From NCBI GenBank assembly GCA_002189035.1, contig NEEC01000017.1, positions 1,612,001 through 1,676,000 on the forward strand: a stretch of 64,000 nt of DNA, read 5' to 3'. The DNA is from Utricularia gibba (lineage: Eukaryota > Plantae > Magnoliophyta). Both the position numbers and the translations under genes were made by a program. Of the stretch, positions 2,045-64,000 are shown in pieces. The first letter of the stretch is position 1. Every line of letters starts with the position of its first letter. A model generated the notes under the pieces. It was not told where the DNA came from. It saw nothing but the letters and a program-made list of their open reading frames with translations, and made no database searches.

Positions 2045-4936
2045 TCATCTGCTTAACACAAAGTAATGCCCCAGCTCTTGGAAGCAGATATCCCATATAC
2101 TTTCCCTTGATTGACGCCTAGAGGGTGTCATCCTTGGTCGAGTCTTGTAAGCACGTTGCGTTGAATAATCACCAGCTTCAGTGAGTGTTTCATCAACATA
2201 TAACTCAAGGGTGTCATTTCCAAGGGTACGCTGTTCTTCAAGCATCTCCAATGCCGACGCAATCACAATCTCAGAACAATTGTCCAAGTGAACAGAAAGC
2301 AGGGAAGGGAGATCTCCTACAGTAGAGGGAATGTTGGAACCAAACATAGACCTCAATATCAACTTCTCAAGGCTGGGGAAGTCACTGCTTTCCACACTGG
2401 GAAGCTTGAGATTATCTCCTGTTAATATTAATAGCTTTACAAGTGGAAACTGTCCATCCACTATGCTCCATTTCCTCATACTGCAATAGTCAAGTATAAG
2501 AACTTCAAGATTTGGTAATGCACCGAGTACCACCATGTCCTTATCAAATATCTCTACTTGGGATAGAACCAACTTTTTTAGTGATTTTGGAAAGAAGCTG
2601 TCCCTCAATCCGCATTCTATACCACGTAAAATCAGTAAGTCCAGTTCTTGAAAGTCTCCAAGATTGTGTAACAAGGGATTACCCTCGTAATCATAGTAGG
2701 ATAACTCCAGACGCTTTACATTTGGGATCCGCAAAACAACATTTTTCTCCAAGTGTAACTCTTCAGTAAATAGTGTCTGTAGTTGATCCATTACGACTTG
2801 ATTTTCCCTTGGCTTAGGCCAAACAACACCATAAACAACTAGAATTCTAAGCTGCTGCATCTCCCAAATTTCATCAGGAAGAGTCAAGTTCCCTCTCCAA
2901 GAAGAACGCGAACACCTGACCTCAAGAATTTGTAGGTTCCAGAGATGAAGTAATGGCAAGGGAAATATAAACTTATGCCCTGATGAGCTCACATTTTTAT
3001 CAGATAAATAGGCAAGCCTTGCTGTAGTTGGGTACACAAAAGGTTTGTCTTTATCCAACATTGAAAAAGTCACAAACTTTGATTTATGCAGATGCGGATA
3101 CGCCATCTGGCATCTTCTGCAAACATGTATATATGACATTGTTTTTGAAGGAAATACTTCAGATACTTCCATCTTTTCTATCAGGGTCTTTGACCCACAT
3201 ATGCAGCGGGAATCACCAAAGCAGCAAGCGCTCCTTGGAATTAAAAGGAAGTTTTCTTTCTTTGATTCCACTAAGCAAAGCTCTAGCAAAAGGTCATGAA
3301 TACCACATGACTCAACTTCTCCAGTTATAGTTTTTACTTTTCCAACAGAAATCAAGTTTCTGTCAATCAACTCACTCATGTATTCAGCAGCAGCATCTTC
3401 TAAAGATTTACCGGGTATTGGTTTCACAAACCCTTCAGCTAACCATCGTGCAAGCATACCTTGTACATTGATCAGAGAGTCTTCAGGATACATTCTAAAA
3501 TACAAGAAGCACGGTTTAAGATGCATAGGTAGGTAGTCGTAACTCAAAGACAGTACCTTCATGCAATCTCCATAAACAACGATTCTCTTCATGTTTTGCA
3601 GAACCTTTTCCCAGTACTCAAAACTCATAGATTTTGACAGGAGGCCACCGATCGTAATCAAGGATAAAGGGAGTCCTTTGCAACTTTTTGCAATTTTTCT
3701 ACCAACGTTTTCTAACTCTGGGGGGTACTCACGACGCCCATTGAAGGACTTACTCCGAAGTAGAAACCAGCTTGAATCTTCATACAAAAGCTCCATAGTG
3801 CATTTTTTACCGCCTTTGAACCCCACAGAATCAGCTACATTGTTTGATCTAGTAGTGACAAGAACTCGACTGAAGTTCTTTTTGTCTGGTAGGAACTTCC
3901 TCAAGTATTCCCAAGGATCAATAGACCACATATCATCCATAACAATCAAGTACCTATGACCATGCAAGTTTTGGTACAACTTTTCCCCAAGAGCCCGGTT
4001 TTCTTTCTCGCTATCATCATCTAGAAGGCTTTGAAGAATCTGACGCTCGTTATAACCCTTAGATACTGTACACCACATACACCTATCGAATCTTCGCTTG
4101 ATTTTTTTATCCTCAAAGACTTGTCGAGCCAGAGTGGTCTTTCCAATTCCACCCATTCCAAGAATGGGAATGATTTGGAGCTTCTTATTGTTATCAGTGA
4201 GCAGATCCATGATCCAGCGTATCTTTTCTTCTAAACCCACAACACCACTTGAGCTCATGTTGGAAGAATCACCATGTATAGAAGATGCACCTGATGGCAT
4301 AATTTCAGCTTTCATGTCATGAATCATCAGCCTTTTCTCAATGAAATCAAGGCTTTGAATCGCCCTACCCATACCTTCACTCCAACCATCAAGTTGGTGC
4401 ATATCAATGAGGATGGCTATTTCGACAACAATAACCGTAATTTCTTCTCCAAAATCCTCTGTTTGAAGTCTCCATGTTTGAGAATTAGCATCAATAAACT
4501 CTACTAAGGATCTCACCTTGTTTAACAGATACGAGAAAACTTCACCTTTCATGTCAACCACCAGTAATTCAAGTTTCCGAATCGTTGCATGCAAATCTCG
4601 AGTGAATGATGAGACCTTTTCAGTCGACCCCTGTGGAGCTGCATCAGACGATGAGTGGCCATGATCCCTTCCATGAAGGTGACCCACAAGCTCCGCATCT
4701 ACCAGGAGTTCTGTTTCGTAAGCTAACACCTTAATTTCTCGAGTTAACGCCTCTATTTTTAAAGTCAGAGCTTGATGCGGAAGATCTTCAAGAAACTGGA
4801 GTATAAATTGCACCTGGCTCCGAAGATCATCAATCAGTTTCTGGTTGATTATCAATCTCCCAACTCCATAAGGTTGCTGAATTTGACCAAGAGATTGCGC
4901 CAAGGAACGCAGAGAAGCATAGCATGCTACCGCCAT
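2045..4936 (-). CDS. CC-NB-ARC-LRR resistance protein, R1A/R1B-like
   Basis: 963-aa ORF with P-loop GMGGIGKTT, kinase-2 YLIVMDDMW, RNBS-B SRVLVTTR, GLPL, RNBS-D CFLYF, MHD variant IHD, and C-terminal LRRs. Confidence 0.95.
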   Translation of the reverse strand: MAVACYASLRSLAQSLGQIQQPYGVGRLIINQKLIDDLRSQVQFILQFLEDLPHQALTLKIEALTREIKVLAYETELLVDAELVGHLHGRDHGHSSSDAAPQGSTEKVSSFTRDLHATIRKLELLVVDMKGEVFSYLLNKVRSLVEFIDANSQTWRLQTEDFGEEITVIVVEIAILIDMHQLDGWSEGMGRAIQSLDFIEKRLMIHDMKAEIMPSGASSIHGDSSNMSSSGVVGLEEKIRWIMDLLTDNNKKLQIIPILGMGGIGKTTLARQVFEDKKIKRRFDRCMWCTVSKGYNERQILQSLLDDDSEKENRALGEKLYQNLHGHRYLIVMDDMWSIDPWEYLRKFLPDKKNFSRVLVTTRSNNVADSVGFKGGKKCTMELLYEDSSWFLLRSKSFNGRREYPPELENVGRKIAKSCKGLPLSLITIGGLLSKSMSFEYWEKVLQNMKRIVVYGDCMKVLSLSYDYLPMHLKPCFLYFRMYPEDSLINVQGMLARWLAEGFVKPIPGKSLEDAAAEYMSELIDRNLISVGKVKTITGEVESCGIHDLLLELCLVESKKENFLLIPRSACCFGDSRCICGSKTLIEKMEVSEVFPSKTMSYIHVCRRCQMAYPHLHKSKFVTFSMLDKDKPFVYPTTARLAYLSDKNVSSSGHKFIFPLPLLHLWNLQILEVRCSRSSWRGNLTLPDEIWEMQQLRILVVYGVVWPKPRENQVVMDQLQTLFTEELHLEKNVVLRIPNVKRLELSYYDYEGNPLLHNLGDFQELDLLILRGIECGLRDSFFPKSLKKLVLSQVEIFDKDMVVLGALPNLEVLILDYCSMRKWSIVDGQFPLVKLLILTGDNLKLPSVESSDFPSLEKLILRSMFGSNIPSTVGDLPSLLSVHLDNCSEIVIASALEMLEEQRTLGNDTLELYVDETLTEAGDYSTQRAYKTRPRMTPSRRQSRESIWDICFQELGHYFVLSR
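4140..4161 (-). promoter_or_regulatory. miR482/2118-family target site in the NLR P-loop codons
   Basis: The plus strand reads TTTCCAATTCCACCCATTCCAA, so the NLR mRNA is complementary to it. This matches 21/22 nt of Solanaceae miR482a as recalled (UUUCCAAUUCCACCCAUUCCUA); the miRNA sequence is from memory and needs checking. Confidence 0.7.
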
Positions 4937-10307: not shown

Positions 10308-11830
10308 TCACAGTGGGAGCTTGGAGGGAGTCCCCGGAGTCCGAGGATACCTTCGTGGGGTACGGTTATCTTTCCGGCATATGACCGCTGTTCGTCTCCC
10401 ATATTGGCTGTGCGACTCTACTGCATTGTAGGCAATCATATGTGATTTTCAGCATAACTGAGACAGTTCAGGTGGAAAGATTGACTAGTGTTCTAGCAAA
10501 AGATGGAAATGAGCTCTGAGAAGCAAAGGTGAAGATTAGCATACCAGGGCATGTTTTCATTAGAGAACCACCCAGCAAACGAATAGCTTTTTCCGCATTC
10601 ATGACTTCCTCCTGCAAAGGTAGAAATAGTGATAAAGGCAGGATGGCTAGTATGCACATCCCTGAACTTAAAGATGACTCACTTCGAGGCAAGCTTACAT
10701 GAGGATCATGACCCTTAGCTGCCACAAACAAGCCACCCACCCGGACTAGAGGAAGACAATATTCAGCTTCAGGAGAAACAAAGAAACATGATGGCAGTTG
10801 CAAATGAATGAACAAAAAACAAAGCCCTGAAAGAAAGATTGAAGCTTTTACCAAGAACCCTCATATCTGCAACAGCTCTAGCAATTGCAACATCAAATTC
10901 CTCCCTATATTCATCATTTTGGCCTACATTCTGCAGAACGTAAAGGATCAGAACAGAACAGCTACTCATTTTAGACATCACACGAGCTACTGCTACCGCT
11001 AAAAAGTCTCCCATACCATGAAACTAAGGACATTTCATGGATGTCAAACAACTACCAAATAATGGGAAAAAAAAAAGGAAGCTTTGCCCCAACATGCACG
11101 CAGACACAAAATGTCACAACTTATACCTCGGCTCGATCGCGCACAATTCGCACATTCTCCAGGCCAATGAGGCTCACAACATGCTCCAAAAAGACACAAC
11201 GCTTATTCATAGACTCTAAAAGAGTAATCTTCCAACCTGGACAACAGATTTCGGTTATGAGCTACCAATCTGCTACCGTGCCATAAACTTCATTGTCTCA
11301 GAAAATCATTAGTAACTATTACCAGGATAAGCAATTGCAAGAACCAATCCCGGCAGTCCAGCGCCGGTGCCAACATCAACTACACTCAAATCGTCAAAAG
11401 AAACCCCGGAACGGGAAAGATAGCAGCTTTGAATTGGTCCTACAATTGCTAACGAGTCCTCTACATGCCGTTCCAGAACATCAGTTTCCTCTTCCACCGC
11501 AGTGAGATTCATTTTCTGCGCCCCAGATCATCCTGGAAATCATTCTCTAAAAAAAACCCTACACGGCATCCAAACATTCGAGCAAACCTGGTTCCACTGG
11601 AGGAGAGACTCAACGTAGAGATGGATTTTACTCTTCTGGGAATTGTCCAGGGCATGATAAAGCGGCAAATTGAGTGAACCGTACACCGAACCACCCGAAT
11701 CCGAGACTTCTCTCGATACAGCTTTACCGGTGGTGCAGACGCCGGAAGTTTTCAACGAAGGAAGGCGCTTGATGAAATTCCCAACTGCGACTATCGAAGA
11801 GAGGTAGCGCGCGCCTATAACAGCTGACAT
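10308..11830 (-). CDS. rsmG: 16S rRNA m7G methyltransferase RsmG/GidB, organelle-targeted, 7 exons
   Basis: LLQWNQ|KMNLTAV...HVEDSL...VVDVGTGAGLPG (SAM motif I)...LLESMNKRCVFL...FDVAIARAV...YPRTPGTPSKLPL*. All exon phases join with GT-AG introns. Confidence 0.93.
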
Positions 11831-12299
11831 TGTTCAGCCGAAGTTGTGCTCCGACTGAGACAAATAAACTATAAAAAAAACTTAATAATGTGACAGATGC
11901 CGAGTTTCTGATATCTGCCCTGATTTGAACAAGAGCATCCAACTCATGGGAAGCGCTTGCTTAGATCAAGGGGAAGCAGACAGAACTTCACTTCTTCCCG
12001 GCTCCCGCATTCCATCCAACGCCATGAATGTTTCCAACAAAACTGGCAAGTCTACAGACCAGAAAAGTGAGGGTGGCAATGACCACGACCACCAACAACC
12101 ACCAAGAAGTTCAGTGGCGGAGAATTGAGAGCGAAATTAACCATCGGACGTCGCTTCGAAATTAACCACGACCGATGTGGATGCCATCACAAATTCAACG
12201 CGGGCTTTGTAAAGCCAGCCCAAAAACACTCTTCGGGCCTGTAATGATGTTCTTTATTCTACTTACAAACCCAACAAGGAACCACAGATGTACTGTAAT

Positions 12300-12304
12300 A
12301 AAAA
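12300..12304 (-). terminator. Pol III oligo-T terminator of TR
   Basis: TTTTT lies 3 nt after the 3' strand of the terminal helix (GTCGCCCTC-ACC-TTTTT). Confidence 0.8.
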
Positions 12305-12586
12305 GGTGAGGGCGACTGTTAAGGGTTGGGCAGCGAGGAACAAGTAGCCGCGAACGCACTCTCTCTTCAGAGAGCGCAGGCAGCACCGCCTTCAAGCCAT
12401 AGCCAACCCGACAACAACAGCAAGGAGTTGAAGCACCAAGGTGCATCGAATGTTTCACATGGAAACATCGGTAAAAGACCATCCCCCCACGCGAAATCCC
12501 GACGCGAGAACCCATCATAACGGATTCAATTGGTTTAGGGTTCATATCAACAGTGCTCAACTCCCCGCACATCGCCCCCGGTGGCT
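12300..12586 (-). ncRNA. TR: Telomerase RNA (plant TR), about 285 nt, template for TTTAGGG
   Basis: USE and TATA upstream, template AACCCTAAACC (12542-12532), G-rich 5' end pairing with the 3' end, H-type pseudoknot after the template, long 3' stem, and a TTTTT terminator. The 5' end is approximate (12579-12586). Confidence 0.9.
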
Positions 12587-12608
12587 GACACGGACCATTC
12601 TCCTGCTC

Positions 12609-12651
12609 TTTTTAAACCAATAAATTTGTAACAAAAAAACCGATGTGGGAT
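12609..12651 (-). promoter_or_regulatory. Type-3 Pol III promoter: USE ATCCCACATCG plus TATA-like TTTAAAAA
   Basis: Exact RTCCCACATCG at 12651-12641, then 24 nt, then TTTAAAAA from 12616. This is the short Pol III-type spacing of plant U6/U3/7SL/TR genes. Confidence 0.88.
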
Positions 12652-13856
12652 ATTATCATCATTATCTTATTTTGTCCACTCGAGCCTGAAATCTGTGTCT
12701 TGGGCCAATCATTCTCGACGCCATGAATGCATCTACAGTCCAGACACACAAGGAGATGGACAGATCCTATGCCCATGTGATGTGGTGGTCCAAACCTCAA
12801 CCATGTCCACCCCACATGAATGATATTATTACAACAAACCCCACATTACAAATACTAAAAAAACTCTTCTTTTCCATTCTAAAATTCCATTCCTAGCATT
12901 GATTCAAATTCATTTTGATTTTGGATCAAGTCCACAATTGGCACATTTCGAAAAAATATCGAAAATTTAGACAATACCTTTCGCATGATAACTCATCTCT
13001 CATGTGATGCTTGCTAGTAAAGACCAATTTGAACCATGGGAGAAAGAACACACACGTGGTATACGGAAAAAGTGGTTTTTATTATTCATTTAAAACTTAA
13101 AAAAATAAGGAAATTGATGATTGGGTCCGGTTAGTGGGCCGGGCCGGTCCGTATACGGAAACCTCATACGGCGGGTACTAACGCGGATGGGCCCCGCTTT
13201 TCGGGAATCTAACACCCATTTGTGACAAGCTGACAACCCACCCTTCTCTGAACAAATAAGAAAAAAGGACAGCACCCACGTGGTGCTGGAATTCCGTTGC
13301 TACCCCTGGAGCAGGAAATTACCAAAACACCCTTCAAGACATCGCTTGTGTTCAGACGGATGAAGGCTATTAATGACAAAAACGAGGTACCGAGTCCAAA
13401 TCATTGTCCACCGTGTCTCCTGTTCAGTTGATCTTCCCACGTTGTGCCAGTTTACACTGAACTACCCTTGTCGTGCTCCTCTGTCCCCCTCTCGCTTCTT
13501 CCCCGTTGAATTATTTTATTGAAAAACATACACATTGTCCTACAACACGTATTTTTCACTCACCACATGCCATTAGATTGTCTCTGATATTCTGTTGCTA
13601 TAAATACTTTTAACTGTGAGAGGATGAGCGAGGTGACTTCAGTCTATGTGTAATGTACGTACCTTCACGGTATTGCTTTTCTCCTCCTTTTCCAGCAATA
13701 ATAGGCAGACAGAAACAGGCATTCATGGCCCCTGTTTGCGCTTAACGCGTCCTTCAAACATGTGGGTTGCGTTTAGATAACCCGGTCGAAGCCTCCATAT
13801 TTCTGTGTCTTTGTGCAGAATCGCTACCTCCCTTGAGGAAAATTTAGTGTTTTGAG

Positions 13857-15152: not shown

Positions 15153-17145
15153 AAAAGGCAGGAAAGTGTAGAGTAGCCGCGTTGTGGCTTTGTAAGTATT
15201 CTATGGAGGCAGAGCAGAAGCTTGCTGCTTCTACATTGACTGGTGGGCCTTTGTACGGAAGTATTTGGGCCTTTTATTATTGGTCCTGGGCCGATTAAAA
15301 AATTTACCTTTTTAAATATGTTTTTCTTTTTTTGAGTAAATATATATTTTTTACTTTTTGATGGTAAAAAAAAACAACTAAAAATAGATATATCTGAATA
15401 AAAAATTAAAATAATTATTTATAATATTAAATATACATATCAATTTAAATCATTAAATATATTTGTATTTCTCATTGTAATTATAAAATATCTAGTACTT
15501 TTTCTCTTTTTATTTCTTAAAAAGTAGAAATAATGAAAGAAAAAGGAGATCAACCAAGAAAGAGTAGAATTAGCTAACACTGAATACCACATCAATTATG
15601 AATGAAATGGAATGATAGTTTGTATAAAGAAAATTTTTCTAATATTGTATAAAACTTTTCGAGAAAAATATAAAACCATAAAAATTAGATTTTTAAAATG
15701 AATAATATTACATAATAATAAAGTAGATTGTTAAACCAAATTTTTTTTATTAAAATTCATTATCAGAGTTAAATTATTGATATATATATATTATTTTCAT
15801 TTTTTGATGTAACATACATATGTATATGCACACACATACATCATTTTCGGATGTATCATATGGTCGTATTTGAAAATTTTAACACATCTCATACCATGGT
15901 TAGCAAAATTTTAGATGATACGGATTTTTCATATATTTTTACTTTCAAATACAAATACGCTCATATTCAAAATTTTTAGACGATACCCATTGTGTAATGT
16001 GGTTAGCATAGTTAGTGTTTCTCCATGTCCGGAATGTCTCCAATTATAGGTGCAAATTGTGTGCATGGGTTAGTTACGGGTATCTATCAAAGTGTAATGG
16101 CCAATAATCTCCCGTTTTGGATGCCTTCAACAGTGAAATCCGACCCCTTTTTCTTTTCCTTTTTCCGCACTCAACCCAGAAAGTCCCACATCGAATAAAT
16201 AAACCCAAATGATTTTGACACTAGCATCAATTTTCCAAATGTATTTATATGAGTATTTTTTATTATTAAAAATGAGAGGTTTTCAGGAACACTATTCGTT
16301 AACTTTGGTGGGGGTCAGTGTGCTTCTAACGCTGGCCACTGTAATACACCAATCACAGCATCACTGTCATGGCCCCACCTTCACCGTCCTGTATGTCATG
16401 AAATAATCATAATACTAATATTTTATTACATTTTATTGAATATCCTCTTTAATATTAATGTGTGTCTGTTTCCAGATAAGGATATGATGAGATTTATTTT
16501 AATTTGAATTAATGTGAGATTTGATTCATTGGAATGAGAAGAAAAAATTGATATATGATCTTATGTACAAAAAAGGTAATTTTAGATGAAAATGAAAGAC
16601 AATAGTCTTAAAATTATTATGAACTCATATTTTAGAAGATAGATAGAATACCCAACTAAGTATGTACTATTTAGTTTTTATGCTGTTAAAATTAAAAATA
16701 TAATAAATTGAACAAATATACGTGAAATTTAAATATATAATAAATAGATATTTTTATTAAAAAATATTAAATTCAATTAATATATAATTATTTGCTCTAA
16801 TAAATATCTTAAAGTTGAATTGATCTTGGTGTGATTAAAACTTTTTTTATTGTATATAGTACTTAGTTTATAAATCGTTCTAACTTGTATCGATTAAATT
16901 TAACGTATTTCTTATTATTTATTATTCATGACATAAAATCCAAATACATAATAAATATATATAATATTAAAAAAATAATCAATAAATAGTGATTCATAAT
17001 ATATTATATATATAATTATTTTAATTAAATTTTTCGATATGAAATTATTTGATTTAATGCATATAAAATCAAAAAGTATTGAGTATAAAAGCATTGGTTG
17101 TTTATAGTTGCATGACAATTCTTCTTTACTGGTTATCCCAATTGA

Positions 17146-27526: not shown

Positions 27527-28846
27527 TCATTGGTCTCCCGGGCAGCTGCTGCAATTTTCGCCTTGCCAACTCCAGACGATCTCCTTGAGGGTGGGGCGCG
27601 CCTCCTCACAGAAGCGCCGGTATTCCAGGGTGTCGCCGGCGGATTTGGAGAACTCGACGACGGCAACCTCAGGCGCTACTTCGAACACCTCGGCGGTCAC
27701 CCCGAGTCTTCCTTTACGGCCCTCGGATGTCCCCTGCATCCTGAGTTTGTAGTCTTTGGTGGACACCGTTTTGAACTTGAGAGTTTTGGCTAGTAGCTCT
27801 AGCTTCCGCATCACTGTGGCGGCGGAGCATTTGGCTGTGAAAAGGGACCCCGATTTCTGCCGGCTCTCGAATAAGCTGGAGAGGTCGAAGCCGGAGGACA
27901 TGGAGGAGATGAATTCGAAGGCGTTGTAGAAGGGAGGTGCTGCTATGGAATCGGAGACGACGGTGTCGTTGTCGACTGGTTCTGGGATCGAGAACTCCTG
28001 GGGGCGATTGAAATTCCGGTAGAACCAGGGGGTTCTCATGATTGCCGGAATCGTAATCCGCCGCGCCGTGTCCGGGACTAGCATCCGCGAAATAAGCTTC
28101 TTGGCTTCACTCGAAAACCAGTGCGGGAACTCGAATTGAGCCTTGAAAATCTTGGTGTACATTTTGATCAAATTCTCTTCCTGGAAGGGGAGATACCCTG
28201 CCAGAAGCACGTACAAGATTACCCCACAGGACCAAATATCCGCCTTTGCACCGTCGTACCCTTTCTTCCGAAGAACCTCCGGCGCGACGTACGCCGGGGT
28301 TCCACACTGGGTATGCAAAAGCCCGTCGTTACGGAGCTGCTCCGGCAACGCCGACAACCCGAAATCGGAAATCTTCAAATTCCCATCCTCATCAAGTAAC
28401 AGATTCTCCAGTTTCAGATCGCGATGAGAAACCCCACGGCTGTGACAGAAATCAACGGCGCTAATCAACTGCTGAAAATACTTCCTCGCGGAATCCTCCT
28501 TCAATCTTCCCCTGGCAATTTTCCCCAACAGATCTCCCCCCTTCACATACTCCATCACGAAGAACACCTTCCGCTTCGTCGCCATAACCTCCTTGATTTC
28601 AACGACGTTCGGGTGCCGGACGAGGCGCATAACTGAAATTTCCCGGCTGATTTGGTCGATTAACCCCTCTTTCTTGACATGATCCTTGCAGATGACTTTG
28701 ATGGCGACGCTTTCGTTGGTCAGTAGATTCCGCCCGTAGTAGACCTTGGCGAAGGTTCCTTGTCCCAGAAGACGGCCCATCTCGTACTTCCCAAAGAGTG
28801 TACTCCGGCAGGCGGCGCCGCCGGTAGCTTGAATGGGATCCTCCAT
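27527..28846 (-). CDS. CBL-interacting protein kinase (SnRK3, CIPK5/25-like), intronless
   Basis: 439 aa with [32 protein letters not shown] and NAF motif [21 protein letters not shown]. Confidence 0.95.
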
Positions 28847-44514: not shown

Positions 44515-47500
44515 TCGCTCCAAAAAACAAAAAAAAATTTCTCGGGTAGAAAGAGAAGCTCCTGTTATTCCTTCCTCAGAAATTCAAATTCGAAATCGTG
44601 GTTTTAAGAGGCGGGGTGCGTGGTGAAATGCGGTGCCTGAAACTTTTGTTCCTTTGAATGCCTGGACAGCAGTTGTTTTTGCAGTAAATTGGTCTCGCTA
44701 TTTTGCTGCAGTCTTTATGCCAACAGCGCGAGCGAGGACTGAAACAAGGTCAGGGAAAAGCAATAAGACCACCCCTTTTTCGATGGCCGTAAGAAGAAAG
44801 AAAGACAGGCAGGCAAATGCATCGAAATCAAAATCATGTGGCAGCCATTAAAGATGAAAGGCTCCCCTTCCCCTTCCCTCCCTCCAGCTCTCTCAAGTAC
44901 AAGTTCTTCCTAAACAGAATATATTAATTATATTAACGTTGCGTATTAAATGTCGAAATTTTAAATTTTAAAAAATAAAAAAATAGGGATTCAGTGACGA
45001 TTCGAGCAATGCATTAATCCAAGTGATTATCACATAATTAAGTATTAATTCTGGACGTGTCGCCCACGCGCGGCCTCACCATGCCCGTGATGAGCGGCGC
45101 CTCTTTAGATCAGGTTTTTTAAATGAAGCTTCAATCGAGGGCTAATTAAGTCATTTCCTATATAAAATGATCAATTTCAGTATTAATTTTTTAAGAAAAA
45201 AAACTTATGTGTAACTATTTTTTTTTTAAATGGTATGTGGGCAAGTAAATTTAGGATTAGACCAGTTTCTAAGACACATGACATGTTCAACCATTTTCAA
45301 CCTTTCTTGAAACCACCTTACCTTTCTTTCTAAATTGGGCAACCTAGAGTAACTGCATCAAAAGGATTCTAAATTTGTGACATATTTCTAACTAAAAAAA
45401 ATTATATGAATTTAGACGAGTTTAAAATAGTGATTATAAATTATAGGATGTTTATTTCATAGACTTAAATAAAATTGTAATTTTTTAATTTCATATATAA
45501 GAATTTATTTAAAGGCACGTTCCTTATTAGGTTACCTATTACGAATTGTTTTTATATTTAAAATACAATTCGAATCTCACTAACTAAACATTATATGTAA
45601 AAAAAAGGCTAATCCCTCTGGATCAACCACTCACTAAGGGAAACTCCATCAATATCCCACATCGACTGAAAAATGGATGAAAATCTCCACACCAACTTCA
45701 ATTCAATGGTGAACTTTTCACCTCTTTCGATGAAGAAGTTGTAATGAAAATGTTTGATACAAATATTTTACTACTAGTATTTGGTGAAAAAGTGGTAACT
45801 ATTCAAGATAAAATCGTAAAATATTATAGTATATAGAAAAATATGATGTGGATTAAAAATTATAATATAAGATAAGAAAAATAGTAAAAGATTAGAGATT
45901 GATATGATTTTCCCAAATCTCGTATAATCCATCCATCACGCATGTGTACCCTTTGTTTCTGGTTCGAGAGATATCTGTCTTTGGCAAGAAGAGTGGCATA
46001 TCTGTAACTAAGTACTTGAGAGGGTCCCACACATTGGACACCTTCATCTCATGCCATAACGCCAACAACTAACTAACTTGGTGCTAGAGGGTGATGAAAC
46101 ATATCATCATGGACCTATCTATGCCTAGGACACATTCATGTGCACACACAGCAGCCATACCATACCCAACCTGTGTGTCTTCTTGGCCTCTCCCTGTTTC
46201 CATGCTCAAGAACAGAGACAAGGATTTGGGAGGGAGAAGAATAGCGTCATCTCCAGCCCACTGTCTCTGCCCTGCCCTTTGGTTAATGCACCAAACTCGG
46301 ACCCGCATCGCGTCACACCTCCAGCACCTGCCTGCCTCTCTGTGATGTGTACGTAACAAGGAGAATGGATGATATTGTTCTTGGATATTTGGCATTAACT
46401 GCTGCACCTTTTTTTTAATGTATTTATGTGAATTATTATTTCAAGTGGTCTGGCTTCAGTATTTAAATATGTTGAAGGTGGTCCATGTCTTTTTTTAACT
46501 GGAAAAGAATTTAAAATTTGCGTTTGTCCTATTTTTCGAAAAGAATTTTTTAAGAAATGATTATAATAAATTATTTATTCAATTTTTTAAAAAAATTCAG
46601 AATTTCTAAATTGATGTCCCTTTTAAAGCAGAAATCGTTCGTTTTTTATATCAGTAGAAATCATTTGTGTTGAATAATAAACTACTTTTGGAACGTTTTT
46701 TTTTTTTAATATAAGAACTTGAGATACAAAGAATTCATTTAGTAGAATGTTTTTTTTATTATAAGTGGAATTATCCAGAAAAAATTAGTTGAGGACATAT
46801 GGGTGTGCTTTGGAAGAATTGTTATTTAAGGAGGAATTATTCATTAAATATTTTATATAAAATCTTATAATTTAATTATTAAAATGCTCAGAATATACAA
46901 TTGGAGAGATACTGTTTTGAAATAAAAAGAATAATATTGTATTTTATCATTATGTTATTAATTAATTCCATTTGATATATGAGCACTAACTTATGTTTTG
47001 ACATAAGTAATAAATAATATATTATTATCTAGTAAATGTGTGATTAACATATGTTATTCAACATAAAGTAATCTTTTGAATTCTACCAAACAAGCCATAA
47101 TGTAGCAGATAAACATACCCCCAATCCATAATTCATTATGCTTCAATTAAATTGTTTTCCTTACTTCAGAAGCATAATTGAAGTTGAACATTTTCATGTG
47201 CAATAGTAGTTGATTTGAGCACCAACTCTCTTATCACATGGGCAGAGGCAAAGATCAACTTAACTCCATCCTTGTACTTCAGAGGCAAGAATCAAAAATC
47301 TCAAATATTAATTGATTTTTTTCTTAATTAAGAAGAACTATCCCTGCACTGCACATGGGTGGTTGATTTGAGCACCAAATGTCTTATTACATGTGGCACA
47401 CTTTGGTTTGAATGTGTGATAATCCTCAATCCCATGACGTTAATAAATAAATTACATATTTATCCATATTTTTAATAATTATATTTTACAAATTGATAAT

Positions 47501-52402: not shown

Positions 52403-54671
52403 ATGGCTTTGAGTATTACAAGCAGTCTTCCTTTTGTATTCAATGCCAATGCCATGTCTCGCAGATGGTGTGCACCAAAACCTGCGCCTGTTATTCGGTG
52501 CAATGCTGGATCTTTTGATAATCCCGATTTGACAGAGCGGCGGTCAGGAAATTTTAAGAAGACAAGATGGGAGTTTGATTACATTCAATCTGTGAACAGC
52601 ACATTCCTGGTATATCTGTATGCAACTTGGTTTGAATTGTGATACACAACAGATAAAAAAAGTGTGTTTCTTTTTTTGGTTTTGCTTGAGTCATCTTCTT
52701 TTGGTTTATCAGGTCATTCAATGTTTATAGAAAGCGACATCCTTTGATGGCATGAATTCCGGTTTTCATCTTGATACAGGATGAGGAGTACAAAGAAAAA
52801 GCAGCAGAACTTGAGAGTGAGGTAAGGATTTTACTCAGATGTAGAGATGAGCAAGCTCCAGAAGCTGGAGTTGGTGGATACATTGCAAAACCTGGGGATT
52901 TCCTACTTATTTGATGCAGAAATAATGAGAATAATGGAGTATGTACAGGAACACAGACATTGCAACAATGATGAGAGGGCTGAAAGAGATTTGTACTCTA
53001 CCTCCATTGAATTCAGATTGTTAAGACAACAAGGGTTTCACATCTCTCCAGGTACTGAGTCAACTTTGAATCCACGTTTTTTGGTATCTAGAGATAACAA
53101 GAAGTATTCTTTACAGAGGTATTTGATGCATTTATCAAGGAAAACGGTGAATTCGATCCACTCCTTAATGATGATACGAAAGGATTGTTGGAGCTTTACG
53201 AGGCCTCCTTCTTGTCCTTCGATGGTGAAGAAACAATGGATCTCGCCAGAGAATTCGCCTCAGTTGCCCTACACAGGTATCTCAAAAATGGTTGTTCTAA
53301 CCATGATGAGACATCTTCTCTTCGTATTCGATATGCACTCCAGCGTCCATTACACTGGAGAGCTGATAGACCAAAGGCTAGATGGTTTATTGACTGGCAT
53401 AAAAGAAACACAGACCAGAAGCATCCAGTGGTTCTTCAACTTGCAAAACTCAACTTCAACATTGTCCAGGCGCACTATCAGCAAGAACTCAAACATGTTG
53501 CAAGGCAATCACAAACTTTTCTTTTTCTCTTTTCTTGAAAAACACTTTACAGTGTTTCTATGCAGGTGGTGGGATGAAGCAGGTTTGGCTAAAAAGCTAC
53601 CTTTTGCGAGGGATAGAGTTGTGGAGTGTTATATCATTGCTCATGGATCGCTTATTCAACCTCACCATCGATTTTTGAGGATAATGAGTGCAAAACATTT
53701 TGCCATTGGCACAGCATATGATGACATTTTCGATGTTTATGGAACACGTGAAGAACTACAACTTCTCCACAATGCCATTCAAAGGTCACTTTCGAATCCT
53801 GATGTCTTGCATGGCAGCAAGAAGAGTTCAATTCTGATTGTAAATACTTGCAGTTGGGATATTGATGATATCAACAAGCTTCCGGGTTACATGAGAATCT
53901 GCTTTGATCAGATAGACCTCTTGATCAAAGAGATGACAGAGCATGTTCAAAGAGCTCAAGGCTTGGTTATCACTCCGTTTCTCAGGAAAGTGGTGAGCAT
54001 TTGCTGACATTGTAAACTTTTGAATGGTTCTAAATATTAATGTTCATGACCACTATGCTGCAGTCGGCAGACATATCCAAAGCATACCTGCAAGAAGCCA
54101 AATGGTACTTCAATGGTCAGTTTCCTTCCATGGAAGAGTGCATAGAAAATGGATGGAGATCTATCGGGATTACTTTGTTATTATCAAACGCCTTCATTCT
54201 CCTCGCAAATCCCATCAATGTGGAGGAGGTTGAAGCCTTTTTGTCATATGATGACGCCACACGATACTCAGGGATCATCTCTCGCCTTGCAAATGATCTT
54301 GCAACCTCCTCGGTTCGTATGCAGTCTGCTCTTTTGGGACACGCACACCTATCTAACCACAATGTTTTAATGTCTTTACATAGGACGAGATGAAGCGAGG
54401 AGACGCTCCAAAATCACTGGAGACTTACATGCATGAGACCGGAGCATCCATTGACGAAGCACAAGACTACCTGAAGCTCCTGAGGTTGCAAACATGGAAG
54501 AAGTTGAACAGGGAACTTGCAGATTCGCGTTTCCCTCGGGAATTCATAAAGCTCGTACTTGAACAGACGAGAATCTTTCTCTTTATGTATGCTGAAGGTG
54601 ATGGCCTTGGAATGCAGGCTGCGCCTACCACCAAGTCCTTCTCTCAACTTCTGTTTGACCCCGTCCTCTAG
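52403..54671 (+). CDS. TPS-b monoterpene synthase-like, copy 2 (7 exons; 2-nt frameshift at about 52837 as assembled, possible pseudogene)
   Basis: Same motifs (RRx8W, RDR, DDIFD, NDLATSS|DE). The exon 2 frame shifts at ttactcagatgta versus copy 1 ttaccgaaggatgta. Confidence 0.82.
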
Positions 54672-61074: not shown

Positions 61075-64000
61075 TCAACGGGCGGATGCACATACGGGTT
61101 GTAGAGGGTATAAGCCATGAACACCGTTGGTGAAATGCTCCTTGTTTTTCCTCCGCTTGGTGACTAGAACAAATCCTTCCCCATCAAGAGTCTTGCCTTC
61201 AGTTACTGCCGTCTCAGCCTTTTGCTCCTTGCTGCATTTGGTATCGGATTCTGGTGAGAGATTTGTTGCAACTGTTTCAGCTGAACTTGCCAAGGACGTA
61301 CTCTTCTTTTCAGTTACTGGAGCCGAAACTTCGGGTTCAGCAGTTCTCTGCAGTGATTTTACAATGAAACTGAGCAGCATCTGCCTTGCTAGGTCGGCTA
61401 CGTCTGCATCAGAGATGTAGCTTAGTCCTTTTCCTGTAACAGCAGATGCAGAAGCATCATCAAGAGTAATCTCCCCGGACCTAATGGGACCAGTACTCGA
61501 TTCAGTAGAATGATCAGCAGGTTTGTAATCCTCTGCAGGTGCATCTGTTGGCTGTGTTCGTTTGGGAACAAATTCCACGGCGTGTGGATTCATTGTCCTT
61601 GGGGAAATAAAGCCACTTCTTTCTGATACCCGAACTTGGTAATTAGCATACCCAGGTCTCATTCGGAAGCCATGGCTTGCCTGATAATACATTGGTGATC
61701 TTGGACCACATGGAACTCTGGCAGTAACTGGAGGGAATCCCACAAGCTCAACAAATGCTCCTTGGGTGGAAGCAGCATCACAGACAGCGGCGGCAGCTGT
61801 TGAAGTTAGTGCCTGTGCTAAAGCATAGGCACTCGGACTGAATGGCTCAGCTGAAGCTGAGAGTTTACTTCCGTTTGTTTCCCCGGGTCTCTCATGGCCA
61901 GTTGGAGAAGGTGTGCCGTCACTGTCAGGATTAGTAACTGCTGAATCAGGTCCAGATTCTACAGTATTATCATCCTCAGTGTCTGGTTTCCCTCCACCGT
62001 ATTCCAATGATGGGGCATCAGGAGAAACCACAATATCCCAGCCTCCTGCTCTATTTCGTTTGGACCATCACATGCTTTGTCAGTTTTTTCAGCACATTTT
62101 TCCTCCACTTTATCCGGTACAAGCTTCAAAACTGTACCTGGAGCAGCTACAGCCACTTCTTTGTAAGATAAAGACTTGGATGCTAATGCTGTGAGGCTTG
62201 CTGGAGGCAGAGGAACCTTCACTGCTGAACTTTTAGCTTCACCATCAATGGTCACACTTAAAGAGCCTGCTTTTCTGTGTGGGGGCGCTTCGGAAGAAAC
62301 AGACTTCGGCAGCACCTTATTAGACGGTAAAATAGCATCTCTTTTATGGGTGTCCTTGTAGTTGCAAACAGGGGAATTTATCTTTAACTTGGCAACATCT
62401 GGACGCCTTTTGTTCAACTTTCTTGTAGCTCCATTTCCAGATCTGCTTTTTGAAATAGCTTCCTGCCACCCTTCATCTGACTTGACATCTTGAATAATTT
62501 CCTCATGAAATGGGATATCTAGTTTGGTAATTTCATTGTCTTGAGGTTGTTCCCGGATGGACTTAATCTCAACTTTATCCTCACCAATCTGGCTATCCTC
62601 AAACACATCAGTAGCCTCTATACTTCCATTGCTGGTGATACCTTCAATTGCTCCCTGGTGCTGCTCTGTGGGGGGCACATCACCAACAGGAAAACTCTAC
62701 AAAGCGAAGCATACAAGTGGATTTAATTGCAAAACTTAAAGTGACAGCGGCTTGACTACAAAACTCAATAATAAAATGATTTTAAGCAAAGAATCAACCT
62801 TTGAACGCCGCTTCCTTTGAGCATCACCAGGCTTTGCTTCCTGATCTGGACTAATGTAATCCAGGAGATCTGACACACTGTAATAACAAGCAAAGAATTA
62901 TGTAGAAAGCTCACATTACATCAAATGAAGGCACCCCTTGAATACCTGAGATGACCCTTGCTGGCAATGGATGCATCCAGCTTTGGGGCTCCAGTGCGGG
63001 CAGCTTCTTGCTGCTCCAGGGCTTTTGACTCAAAATACTCAAGCCATGCAGCAGCATCCTGCAGTTACAGAAGACTAAGCAACAGGCAATAGAAATTGAA
63101 TGTACATTAACTGAGCATTCTAAAGGAGAAAAGATCGATACATTACACAAGTAGATATACTACAAAATTGAAACTTGAGCAGTCTACTTCTTATTCCTTA
63201 GTTTAACCATGCATTTGTAGAAATGTATATCAGCTCATAAAATACACACTCGAATCCTAGAATTTAAACTGAGCAGAATGTAACCGAAATTTTCTAAACC
63301 TGCGTGCGGAGGTCATCTGCTCCAAGTTTTGCTTGAAGAATTTGCAAGGTAGTTTTTTCATGCTGCACACTTAGTGTATATGCTTCCATCAATGAAAGAG
63401 CTATGGCAATGGCGTGATAGCTAGCAGCAGTCTGTCAAATAGAGCGACCAGTCTTAAATATTGAAATCTAGTAGCTAACAATTTGCAGGAAATTTCAGAG
63501 AGGATCTGCATGGGAAATTGCTATGAACCATGACTGCCGATGTGGGATATTGGAAATATTGAAAGATACCTGTATATGATCAGCTCCTAATAATTTTTGG
63601 TTGCACTTGAGAGCTTCATGCAAATATCTGAGAGCAACATGAACATTTCCCATCCCCTCCTCCATCATAGCCACATTTATGTAAGTAGCTGCTGTATTTG
63701 GGTGTGCAAGCCCACATGTGAAATGGAGAAGGTACAGTGCACGGTTGACGTATCTGCTCATGGATGATAAAAAATGAAGTTGATTTAGCCCACAAAAGAG
63801 TAGGTGGAGAAAGTCACTCGGAGCCACAGACAAGGGTACCTACTTTAAAGCCAATTCAATGTGTTGAAGACGGTAGTAAAAAACTGATAGATCCCCATAA
63901 CTCTTCATTGTATCTGGATGATCAAGCCCGAGCTCCCTTTCATTGATATCAAGTGCTTTCTGCTGGTATATAGTTGCCTAAAAAGGAACATTTGCAGAAT
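61075..64000 (-). CDS. CLU/TSS/REDUCED CHLOROPLAST COVERAGE-family TPR protein (REC3-like), 5' partial; probable 1-nt frameshift at 62037-62039
   Basis: Exons [31 protein letters not shown]|[10 protein letters not shown]...[16 protein letters not shown]...|[13 protein letters not shown]...|[12 protein letters not shown]...|[25 protein letters not shown] and [10 protein letters not shown]. Confidence 0.9.

Follow-up and report, generated by a model that had tools for sequence, protein, structure and literature searches.

A transcribed, unannotated locus that is very probably a telomerase RNA gene of a Lamiales plant, with a template whose redundant positions disagree

The 64-kb stretch of Utricularia gibba DNA analysed here (hereafter the window) contains, between two protein-coding genes, a short non-coding gene on the minus strand. 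Downstream of it and on the same strand lies a spliced GidB/RsmG gene (exons 11127-11234, 11321-11515 and 11588-~12014), and an HT1-like Raf-type kinase occupies the plus strand on its other side; both neighbours had been recognised in an earlier note on this sequence. The open reading frame spanning the RNA has no protein relatives in a translated search that included proteins mis-called from transcripts of related plants. About 450 nt upstream of the kinase start, a non-coding block (13414-13458) recurs in Paulownia (L001, 9313-9357) and in Sesamum (L002, 9306-9350), and probably represents a promoter element or a 5' UTR. Further genes of the window are a 963-amino-acid NB-ARC resistance-type open reading frame (2045-4936, minus strand), an intronless CIPK (27527-28846, minus strand) and a terpene synthase fragment (52847-54007, plus strand). 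The best protein matches of the CIPK (27530-28846) come from Lamiales (Handroanthus, Sesamum, Phtheirospermum and Paulownia, 75-78%), with Nicotiana at 72%, and because of these matches the host of the RNA gene was placed in the Lamiales; Capsicum, considered for a time as the source, was rejected on the same figures. The gene density and a long branch inside the order would suit a species of Lentibulariaceae such as Utricularia.

We are confident that the segment 12651-12300 of the minus strand is an expressed and unannotated land-plant telomerase RNA (TR) gene of this order, orthologous to Arabidopsis AtTR/AtR8. Its features are collected in Table 1. The USE and the TATA box lie 24 nt apart, as they do in all eight comparator genes described below, and according to the rule that a distance of 23-24 bp denotes Pol III and one of 32-34 bp Pol II (PMC8287931), this is the spacing of RNA polymerase III. 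The oligo-T stretch that is expected about 230-290 nt past the start of plant TRs is present as a run of five T. All these elements were found where the earlier note had placed them, and a G-run begins at 12579, roughly 30 nt beyond the TATA box.

Table 1. Features of the TR locus, in coordinates of the window, and the evidence on which each was placed.
Feature	Position	Strand	Basis
USE ATCCCACATCG, plant snRNA-type (type 3) promoter	12641-12651	-	exact match to RTCCCACATCG; unchanged in X7 copy
TATA box TTTAAAAA	12609-12616	-	24 nt 3' of USE
TR transcript, about 280-287 nt; 5' end inferred at ~12586-12579, 3' end within the T-run	12300-12586	-	covariance model and RNA contigs
P1a, 5' strand (G-rich 5' end, GGGGGCGAT)	12571-12579	-	pairs 9/9 with 12316-12308; 7/7 model pairs kept, 3 compensatory
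P1c (core-closing helix), 5' strand	12552-12568	-	pairs with 12437-12420; 11/11 model pairs kept, 6 compensatory
Putative template GAACCCUAAACC	12532-12543	-	comparators; G12543 replaces A
Hairpin directly 3' of template, 8 bp, 4-nt loop	12508-12527	-	fold
Lineage-specific linker with indel polymorphism, containing the arms a and b proposed earlier	12483-12507	-	no comparator counterpart
Pseudoknot, whole (P2, J2/3u and P3; downstream loop GUG, 3 nt)	12447-12482	-	
P2, AUGG/CCAU	12482-12479/12462-12459	-	alignment to comparators; 4 bp, 2 compensatory pairs
J2/3u, U-rich, UCUUUUAC	12478-12471	-	8 nt; alignment to comparators
P3, CGAUGUUU/AAACAU-U-CG	12470-12463/12455-12447	-	8 bp, one bulged U, 2 compensatory pairs
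P1c, 3' strand	12420-12437	-	fold and model pairs
Long 3' stem (P4/P5/P6 equivalent), apical hairpin 12378-12355	12317-12416	-	14/14 model pairs kept, 2 compensatory
P1a, 3' strand (C-rich 3' end, GTCGCCCTC)	12308-12316	-	fold and model pairs
Oligo-T Pol III terminator, T5 (T9 in X7 copy)	12300-12304	-	sequence; X3 RNA contig ends at 12306

A second version of the gene was obtained from a DNA run that carries the same organism label (X7) and that, at 80% likeness, yields one copy of the locus, rebuilt here from its difference table. This copy is ~93% identical to the window (16 substitutions and several indels), and no exact copy was found in the run. The USE, the TATA box and the stretch 12580-12521, which comprises the 5' end, the 5' strands of P1a and P1c and the template, are unchanged in it. 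The promoter spacers carry six substitutions in all, four of them in the spacer adjoining the USE against none in the USE itself, and the T-run is lengthened from five to nine.

The USE motif is found elsewhere in the window. Three extra exact copies of its 10-mer TCCCACATCG occur at 16184-16193 and 45655-45664 on the plus strand and at 63538-63547 on the minus strand, with ~0.1 expected by chance; no TATA box accompanies any of the three at the distance typical of snRNA genes, and Rfam recognised no adjacent RNA gene. Those at 45655 and 63538 have a longer sequence, AATATCCCACATCG, in common with the USE of the TR promoter itself. A USE-like ATCCACATCGG, one base short of the consensus and without a TATA box after it, lies at 12178-12188 of the minus strand, past the TR terminator and ahead of the RsmG transcription start.

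The locus is transcribed. RNA run X3 holds an unspliced contig of 262 nt (12306-12567), 100% identical to the window and covered at depth 20, compared with 8 for the adjacent spliced RsmG mRNA. Coverage in this run is zero at 12010-12305 and at 12616-13200, and these silent flanks show that the contig does not derive from genomic DNA carry-over. RNA run X6 provided a 292-nt contig (12321-12603) with four differences, which reaches upstream of the predicted start; the transcript data being assembled contigs, all such ends are approximate. Spliced RsmG contigs in X3, X6 and X9 identify these as RNA libraries. The TR RNA is absent from the assembled contigs of X9 and X10, which belong to the same study as X3. 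A small, non-spliced RNA is found in two libraries, X3 and X6, with silent flanks in X3.

Comparators were sought by scanning metagenome contigs for a USE, 20-27 nt, TWTAWA, 45-75 nt and CCCTAAA, a pattern that returned 73 loci. Eleven of them are clear TR-like genes, which fall into four lineages (L012/L019/L029/L044; L017; L024, which equals L070; and L036/L045/L054/L031). The ten complete copies (L031 is cut by the end of its contig) are 232-275 nt long and have a USE-TATA gap of 24 nt; they are G-rich at the 5' end and C-rich at the 3' end, and all have a T-run. As the comparators were chosen by the USE-TATA-CCCTAAA pattern, their identity as TRs rests on this logic together with mutual conservation and covariation; the covariance model presented below covers the transcribed sequence only, so that CCCTAAA is the sole part shared by selection. 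One TR copy, L029:2755-2997, is devoid of the loop and of the 3' strands of both P2 and P3, and either pseudogene status or an artefact of assembly may account for this. Most of the 73 loci belong to a widespread plant repeat family (L005, L006, L008, L021, L023, L028, L033, L043 and ~20 others) with TCCCACATCG at its start, a TATA-like run ~24 nt later and CCCTAAA at +91, some of the loci being tandem. Since this family carries both USE and CCCTAAA, it is a source of false positives for searches of plant TRs that combine USE and template.

An alignment of eight comparator sequences (A1) folds into P1a, P1c, a P3 hairpin and the P4-P6 stem, with covariation. Used as a sequence profile (nhmmer), A1 has a single match in the window, at 12549-12333 of the minus strand (E 5e-5; next E 2.8). 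After removal of the template columns the best match in the window is still the TR locus; the pseudoknot columns alone find 12480-12450 (E 0.005), and the best match of all post-template columns is again at the TR locus (E 0.026). The covariance model R1, built from the same eight metagenome genes without the window sequence, matches the 64 kb only at 12302-12580 of the minus strand, over model positions 1-258 of 258, with 33.4 bits and E ~7e-9 (next E 1.6). Over 736 kb (the window and 77 loci) its only matches are the window, the genes used for training and duplicates of these, and the other 66 fetched loci gave none. The window row pairs at 45 of the 46 consensus positions, 13 of them via changes on both sides, and the one pair that fails belongs to a spurious RNAalifold helix of the template with a P2 strand. 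In the model-based alignment A3, 92.4% of the cells are paired compared with 42-62% for slid partners, both sides have changed in 18 pairs compared with 1-3 in the slid controls, and 0/500 shuffles reach the observed values, figures that are flattered by the fitting of A3 to the model. The covariance check by Infernal suggested in the earlier note thus returned a full-length match, and together with the discrete transcript it supports that note's identification of the locus as a TR gene.

Two other approaches were silent. Rfam, both at its gathering thresholds and at E up to 10, reported no telomerase family at the locus, only snoRNA-level noise. It reported none on comparator L012 either, so this result says nothing against a plant TR; Rfam appears to be without any model that recognises plant TRs. 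Likewise, no TR was found near the HT1-like kinase of Paulownia, Sesamum radiatum or Andrographis or near the CIPK of Genlisea aurea, and conservation at these loci is confined to the query gene. This failure of synteny agrees with the mobility of TR genes reported in Mimulus, where the position of the gene is likewise non-syntenic between relatives (PMC10723376). In Sesamum radiatum, 7 kb upstream of the HT1-like kinase (L002:3037-3075), GTCCCACATCG is followed after 20 nt by TTTAAAAT; there is no G-rich start or template downstream, and this USE/TATA pair has no recognisable RNA gene attached. Comparison with the TRs of Nicotiana and Arabidopsis was limited to primer-length pieces.

The minimum free energy fold of 12579-12300 (-124.7 kcal/mol, z = -7.0 against dinucleotide shuffles) recovers the stem between the 5' and 3' ends, the stem around the template, here lengthened to 17 bp, and the long 3' stem, tipped by CTCTCT/AGAGAG. 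The earlier note had read the same helices from the sequence, as a 9/9 pairing of the G-rich and C-rich ends (GGGGGCGAT with GTCGCCCTC), a 12/12 pairing of GCGGGGAGTTGA (12568-12557) with TCAACTCCTTGC (12431-12420) and, in the 3' stem, GGGTTGG/CCAACCC and a CTCTCT-GAAG-AGAGAG hairpin, and all of these pairings hold. The hairpin that follows the template is matched in position, though not in sequence, by one in 8 of 11 comparator rows and by one in the TR oligos of Nicotiana sylvestris, and its sole change in X7 affects a loop position. Elsewhere in the stems of the X7 copy, 12430 C>T converts a G-C pair of P1c into G-U, 12332 T>C converts G-U into G-C, U-G results from 12326 A>G, and 12373 T>G disrupts one apical pair of the 3' stem; the X6 and X7 changes at 12332 and 12326 keep the pairing.

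The pseudoknot had to be redrawn. The earlier note had proposed an a-b-a'-b' arrangement, and both of its complementarities exist, but the arms a and b (12504-12487) are without counterpart in the eight comparators. They also fall in a linker that is 15 nt shorter in X7, the missing nucleotides lying within 12478-12505; the proposed pairing was therefore wrong, and the conserved pseudoknot uses other partners. Its blocks in the comparators are GGGG, UGUUUUAC, CAGUGUUU, CCCC, an A-rich loop, and AAACACUG then AUGC. Most comparators have GGGG/CCCC as P2, whereas L017 has AGGG/CCCU and the window AUGG/CCAU. In the published description of plant TR pseudoknots (PMC8287931), P2 is short and G/C-rich, the U-rich J2/3u measures 6-8 nt, P3 comprises 7-12 bp and the downstream loop 6-29 nt; the P2, J2/3u and P3 predicted for the window fit this description. 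The downstream loop has 3 nt, which lies outside the published range and compares with 14-23 nt and an A-rich composition in the comparators, and the linker from template to P2 has 49 nt, compared with 12-38 nt in the comparators.

The differences observed in X7 fit the homology-based model of P2 and P3, as the 15-nt indel falls upstream of P2, 12458 G>C either lies in the loop or extends P2, and 12450 T>A only moves the bulge of P3. An alternative pseudoknot derived from the X7 differences (GAUGGG/UCCAUC with UUUUAC/GUGAAA) was dropped, and P2 and P3 were set by comparator homology. When the final pseudoknot was compared with shuffles, the outcome was 35/3000, with criteria set after the fact, and this result is not relied on. 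Altogether, three haplotypes of 12250-12700 are found under one organism label, one identical to the window, one ~1.5% different and one ~7% different with indels, which suggests that the accessions sampled have diverged deeply or include cryptic species.

Land-plant TRs have been published as a class, together with their promoter logic and architecture, and TRs are also known from Genlisea, the likely sister genus; what is new here is one more TR gene. It resembles AtTR (AtR8) and the other land-plant TRs (Fajkus et al. 2019, PMC6765143; Song et al. 2019) in the type-3 Pol III spacing of USE and TATA box, the oligo-T, a length of ~260-290 nt, the pairing of G-rich and C-rich ends in P1a, the P1c helix around a template-pseudoknot core, the U-rich J2/3u and the long P4-P6 stem. 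It departs from that family in its short pseudoknot loop, its long linker and the 5' position of its template, which is G rather than A. The Genlisea TRs (Lentibulariaceae, Lamiales; Fajkus et al. 2019) are probably its nearest published relatives. With the TRs of Mimulus, also Lamiales, it shares a pseudoknot region (CR2/CR3) rich in indels; in Mimulus, template and telomere have changed to AAACCCG or AAACCG, whereas the gene of the window keeps AACCCTA (PMC10723376).

By analogy with the family, the RNA would bind TERT, and the single-stranded GAACCCUAAACC, located between the core-closing helix P1c and the P2/P3 pseudoknot, would serve as template. The 3' end of the chromosome would align on AAACC, after which the template would direct the addition of TTTAGGG repeats. 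The long 3' stem may act as a second TERT-binding arm and as the dyskerin-binding arm, and the 3' U-tail as a binding site for La.

The 11-mer AACCCTAAACC, in which the earlier note had recognised the template (12542-12532), has no other match within the window at up to one mismatch. With 7+4 nt the template is longer than one repeat, and it is unpaired between P1c and the hairpin that follows. The comparator template AAACCCUAAAC forms invariant columns in 8/8 sequences, and the Nicotiana TR oligos read alike. In the window, as in X6 and X7, the 5' A of the comparators is replaced by G12543. This nucleotide is one repeat length from A12536, so that redundant template positions disagree, being G and A here and A and A in the comparators. 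The earlier note's prediction of TTTAGGG telomeres from the template, read as TTTAGGG only, overlooks G12543.

Judging from the template sequence, we tentatively propose, as a possibility that falls somewhat short of even chances, that one telomerase RNA may write two repeats, TTTAGGG and TTCAGGG (mixed TT[T/C]AGGG), without a second paralog. If the enzyme stopped before G12543, the next round would copy A12536 and give TTTAGGG; if G12543 were copied, TTCAGGG would be produced, and the following re-alignment would involve one C-A mismatch. The 64-kb window holds no telomere array. Utricularia scaffold ends were reported to carry Arabidopsis-type repeats with Genlisea-type variants nearby (PMC6982007), and variant telomere repeats with TTCAGG occur in Lentibulariaceae, the family of Genlisea. 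Degenerate repeats are also known in distant lineages, namely GGGTT[T/C]A in Plasmodium, GGGTT[T/A]A in tomato and GGG[G/T]TT in Paramecium (PMC3082875), each with two variants at one position, as proposed here. Paramecium has one identified TR, which encodes only G4T2, whereas the cause proposed for the window is the disagreement between the two template ends (PMC3082875).

Mixed repeats would also be obtained if the species had two or more TR paralogs, the copy in the window templating TTTAGGG only and a diverged CCCUGAA-type copy (CCCUGAACC template) supplying TTCAGGG. Capsicum offers a precedent, since it reportedly makes its TT[T/C]AGGG telomeres with two TR paralogs, distinguished by the T/C position (PMC12134996 and PMC12133305, both citing Zavodnik 2023); Capsicum distributes over two genes what the window has in one, with both versions at redundant positions of a single template. 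TR duplication is, moreover, frequent in Mimulus, likewise a member of the Lamiales (PMC10723376). Against paralogs, the DNA runs X2 and X7 and the RNA runs X3 and X6 each hold one version of the locus, with no partial second match at 80% likeness, although holes in such data prove nothing and this evidence is weak. We regard a second gene as only slightly less likely than a single RNA with disagreeing template ends, each of the two being less likely than not.

That the locus is a decaying or non-functional TR pseudogene, still transcribed, is very improbable. Its unusually short downstream pseudoknot loop and its expanded, indel-polymorphic linker would suit such a fate, for which L029, a TR copy without the P3 3' strand, is a precedent, but it is the only copy found in the four runs, its promoter boxes, template and all helices are intact, and the changes between haplotypes spare the 5' 60 nt and mostly keep the pairing. 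Less probable still is another type-3 Pol III non-coding RNA (snRNA-like, 7SK, MRP or similar) with a telomere-like 11-mer by chance, an explanation that could appeal to the three additional USE 10-mers of the window and to the presence of the motif in the plant repeat family, but that is effectively refuted by the covariance model and the pairing results, given the full-length match with 13 compensatory pairs, the homology of pseudoknot and 3' block independent of the template, the want of any Rfam family match and the lack of a correctly spaced TATA box at the other three USE copies.

Telomerase RNA is essential, and its gene is an expected housekeeping gene that diverges fast. This fast divergence hides plant TRs from Rfam and from standard annotation, and each confirmed gene enlarges a comparative set that is still small, in this case with one from a fast-evolving lineage of the Lamiales. 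The short pseudoknot loop, and a linker whose length differs by 15 nt among copies of the same label, show which parts of the core tolerate change. If a single RNA does write both repeats, a mismatch of one base between redundant template ends would explain telomeres of mixed repeats in a way other than the TR duplication already published.
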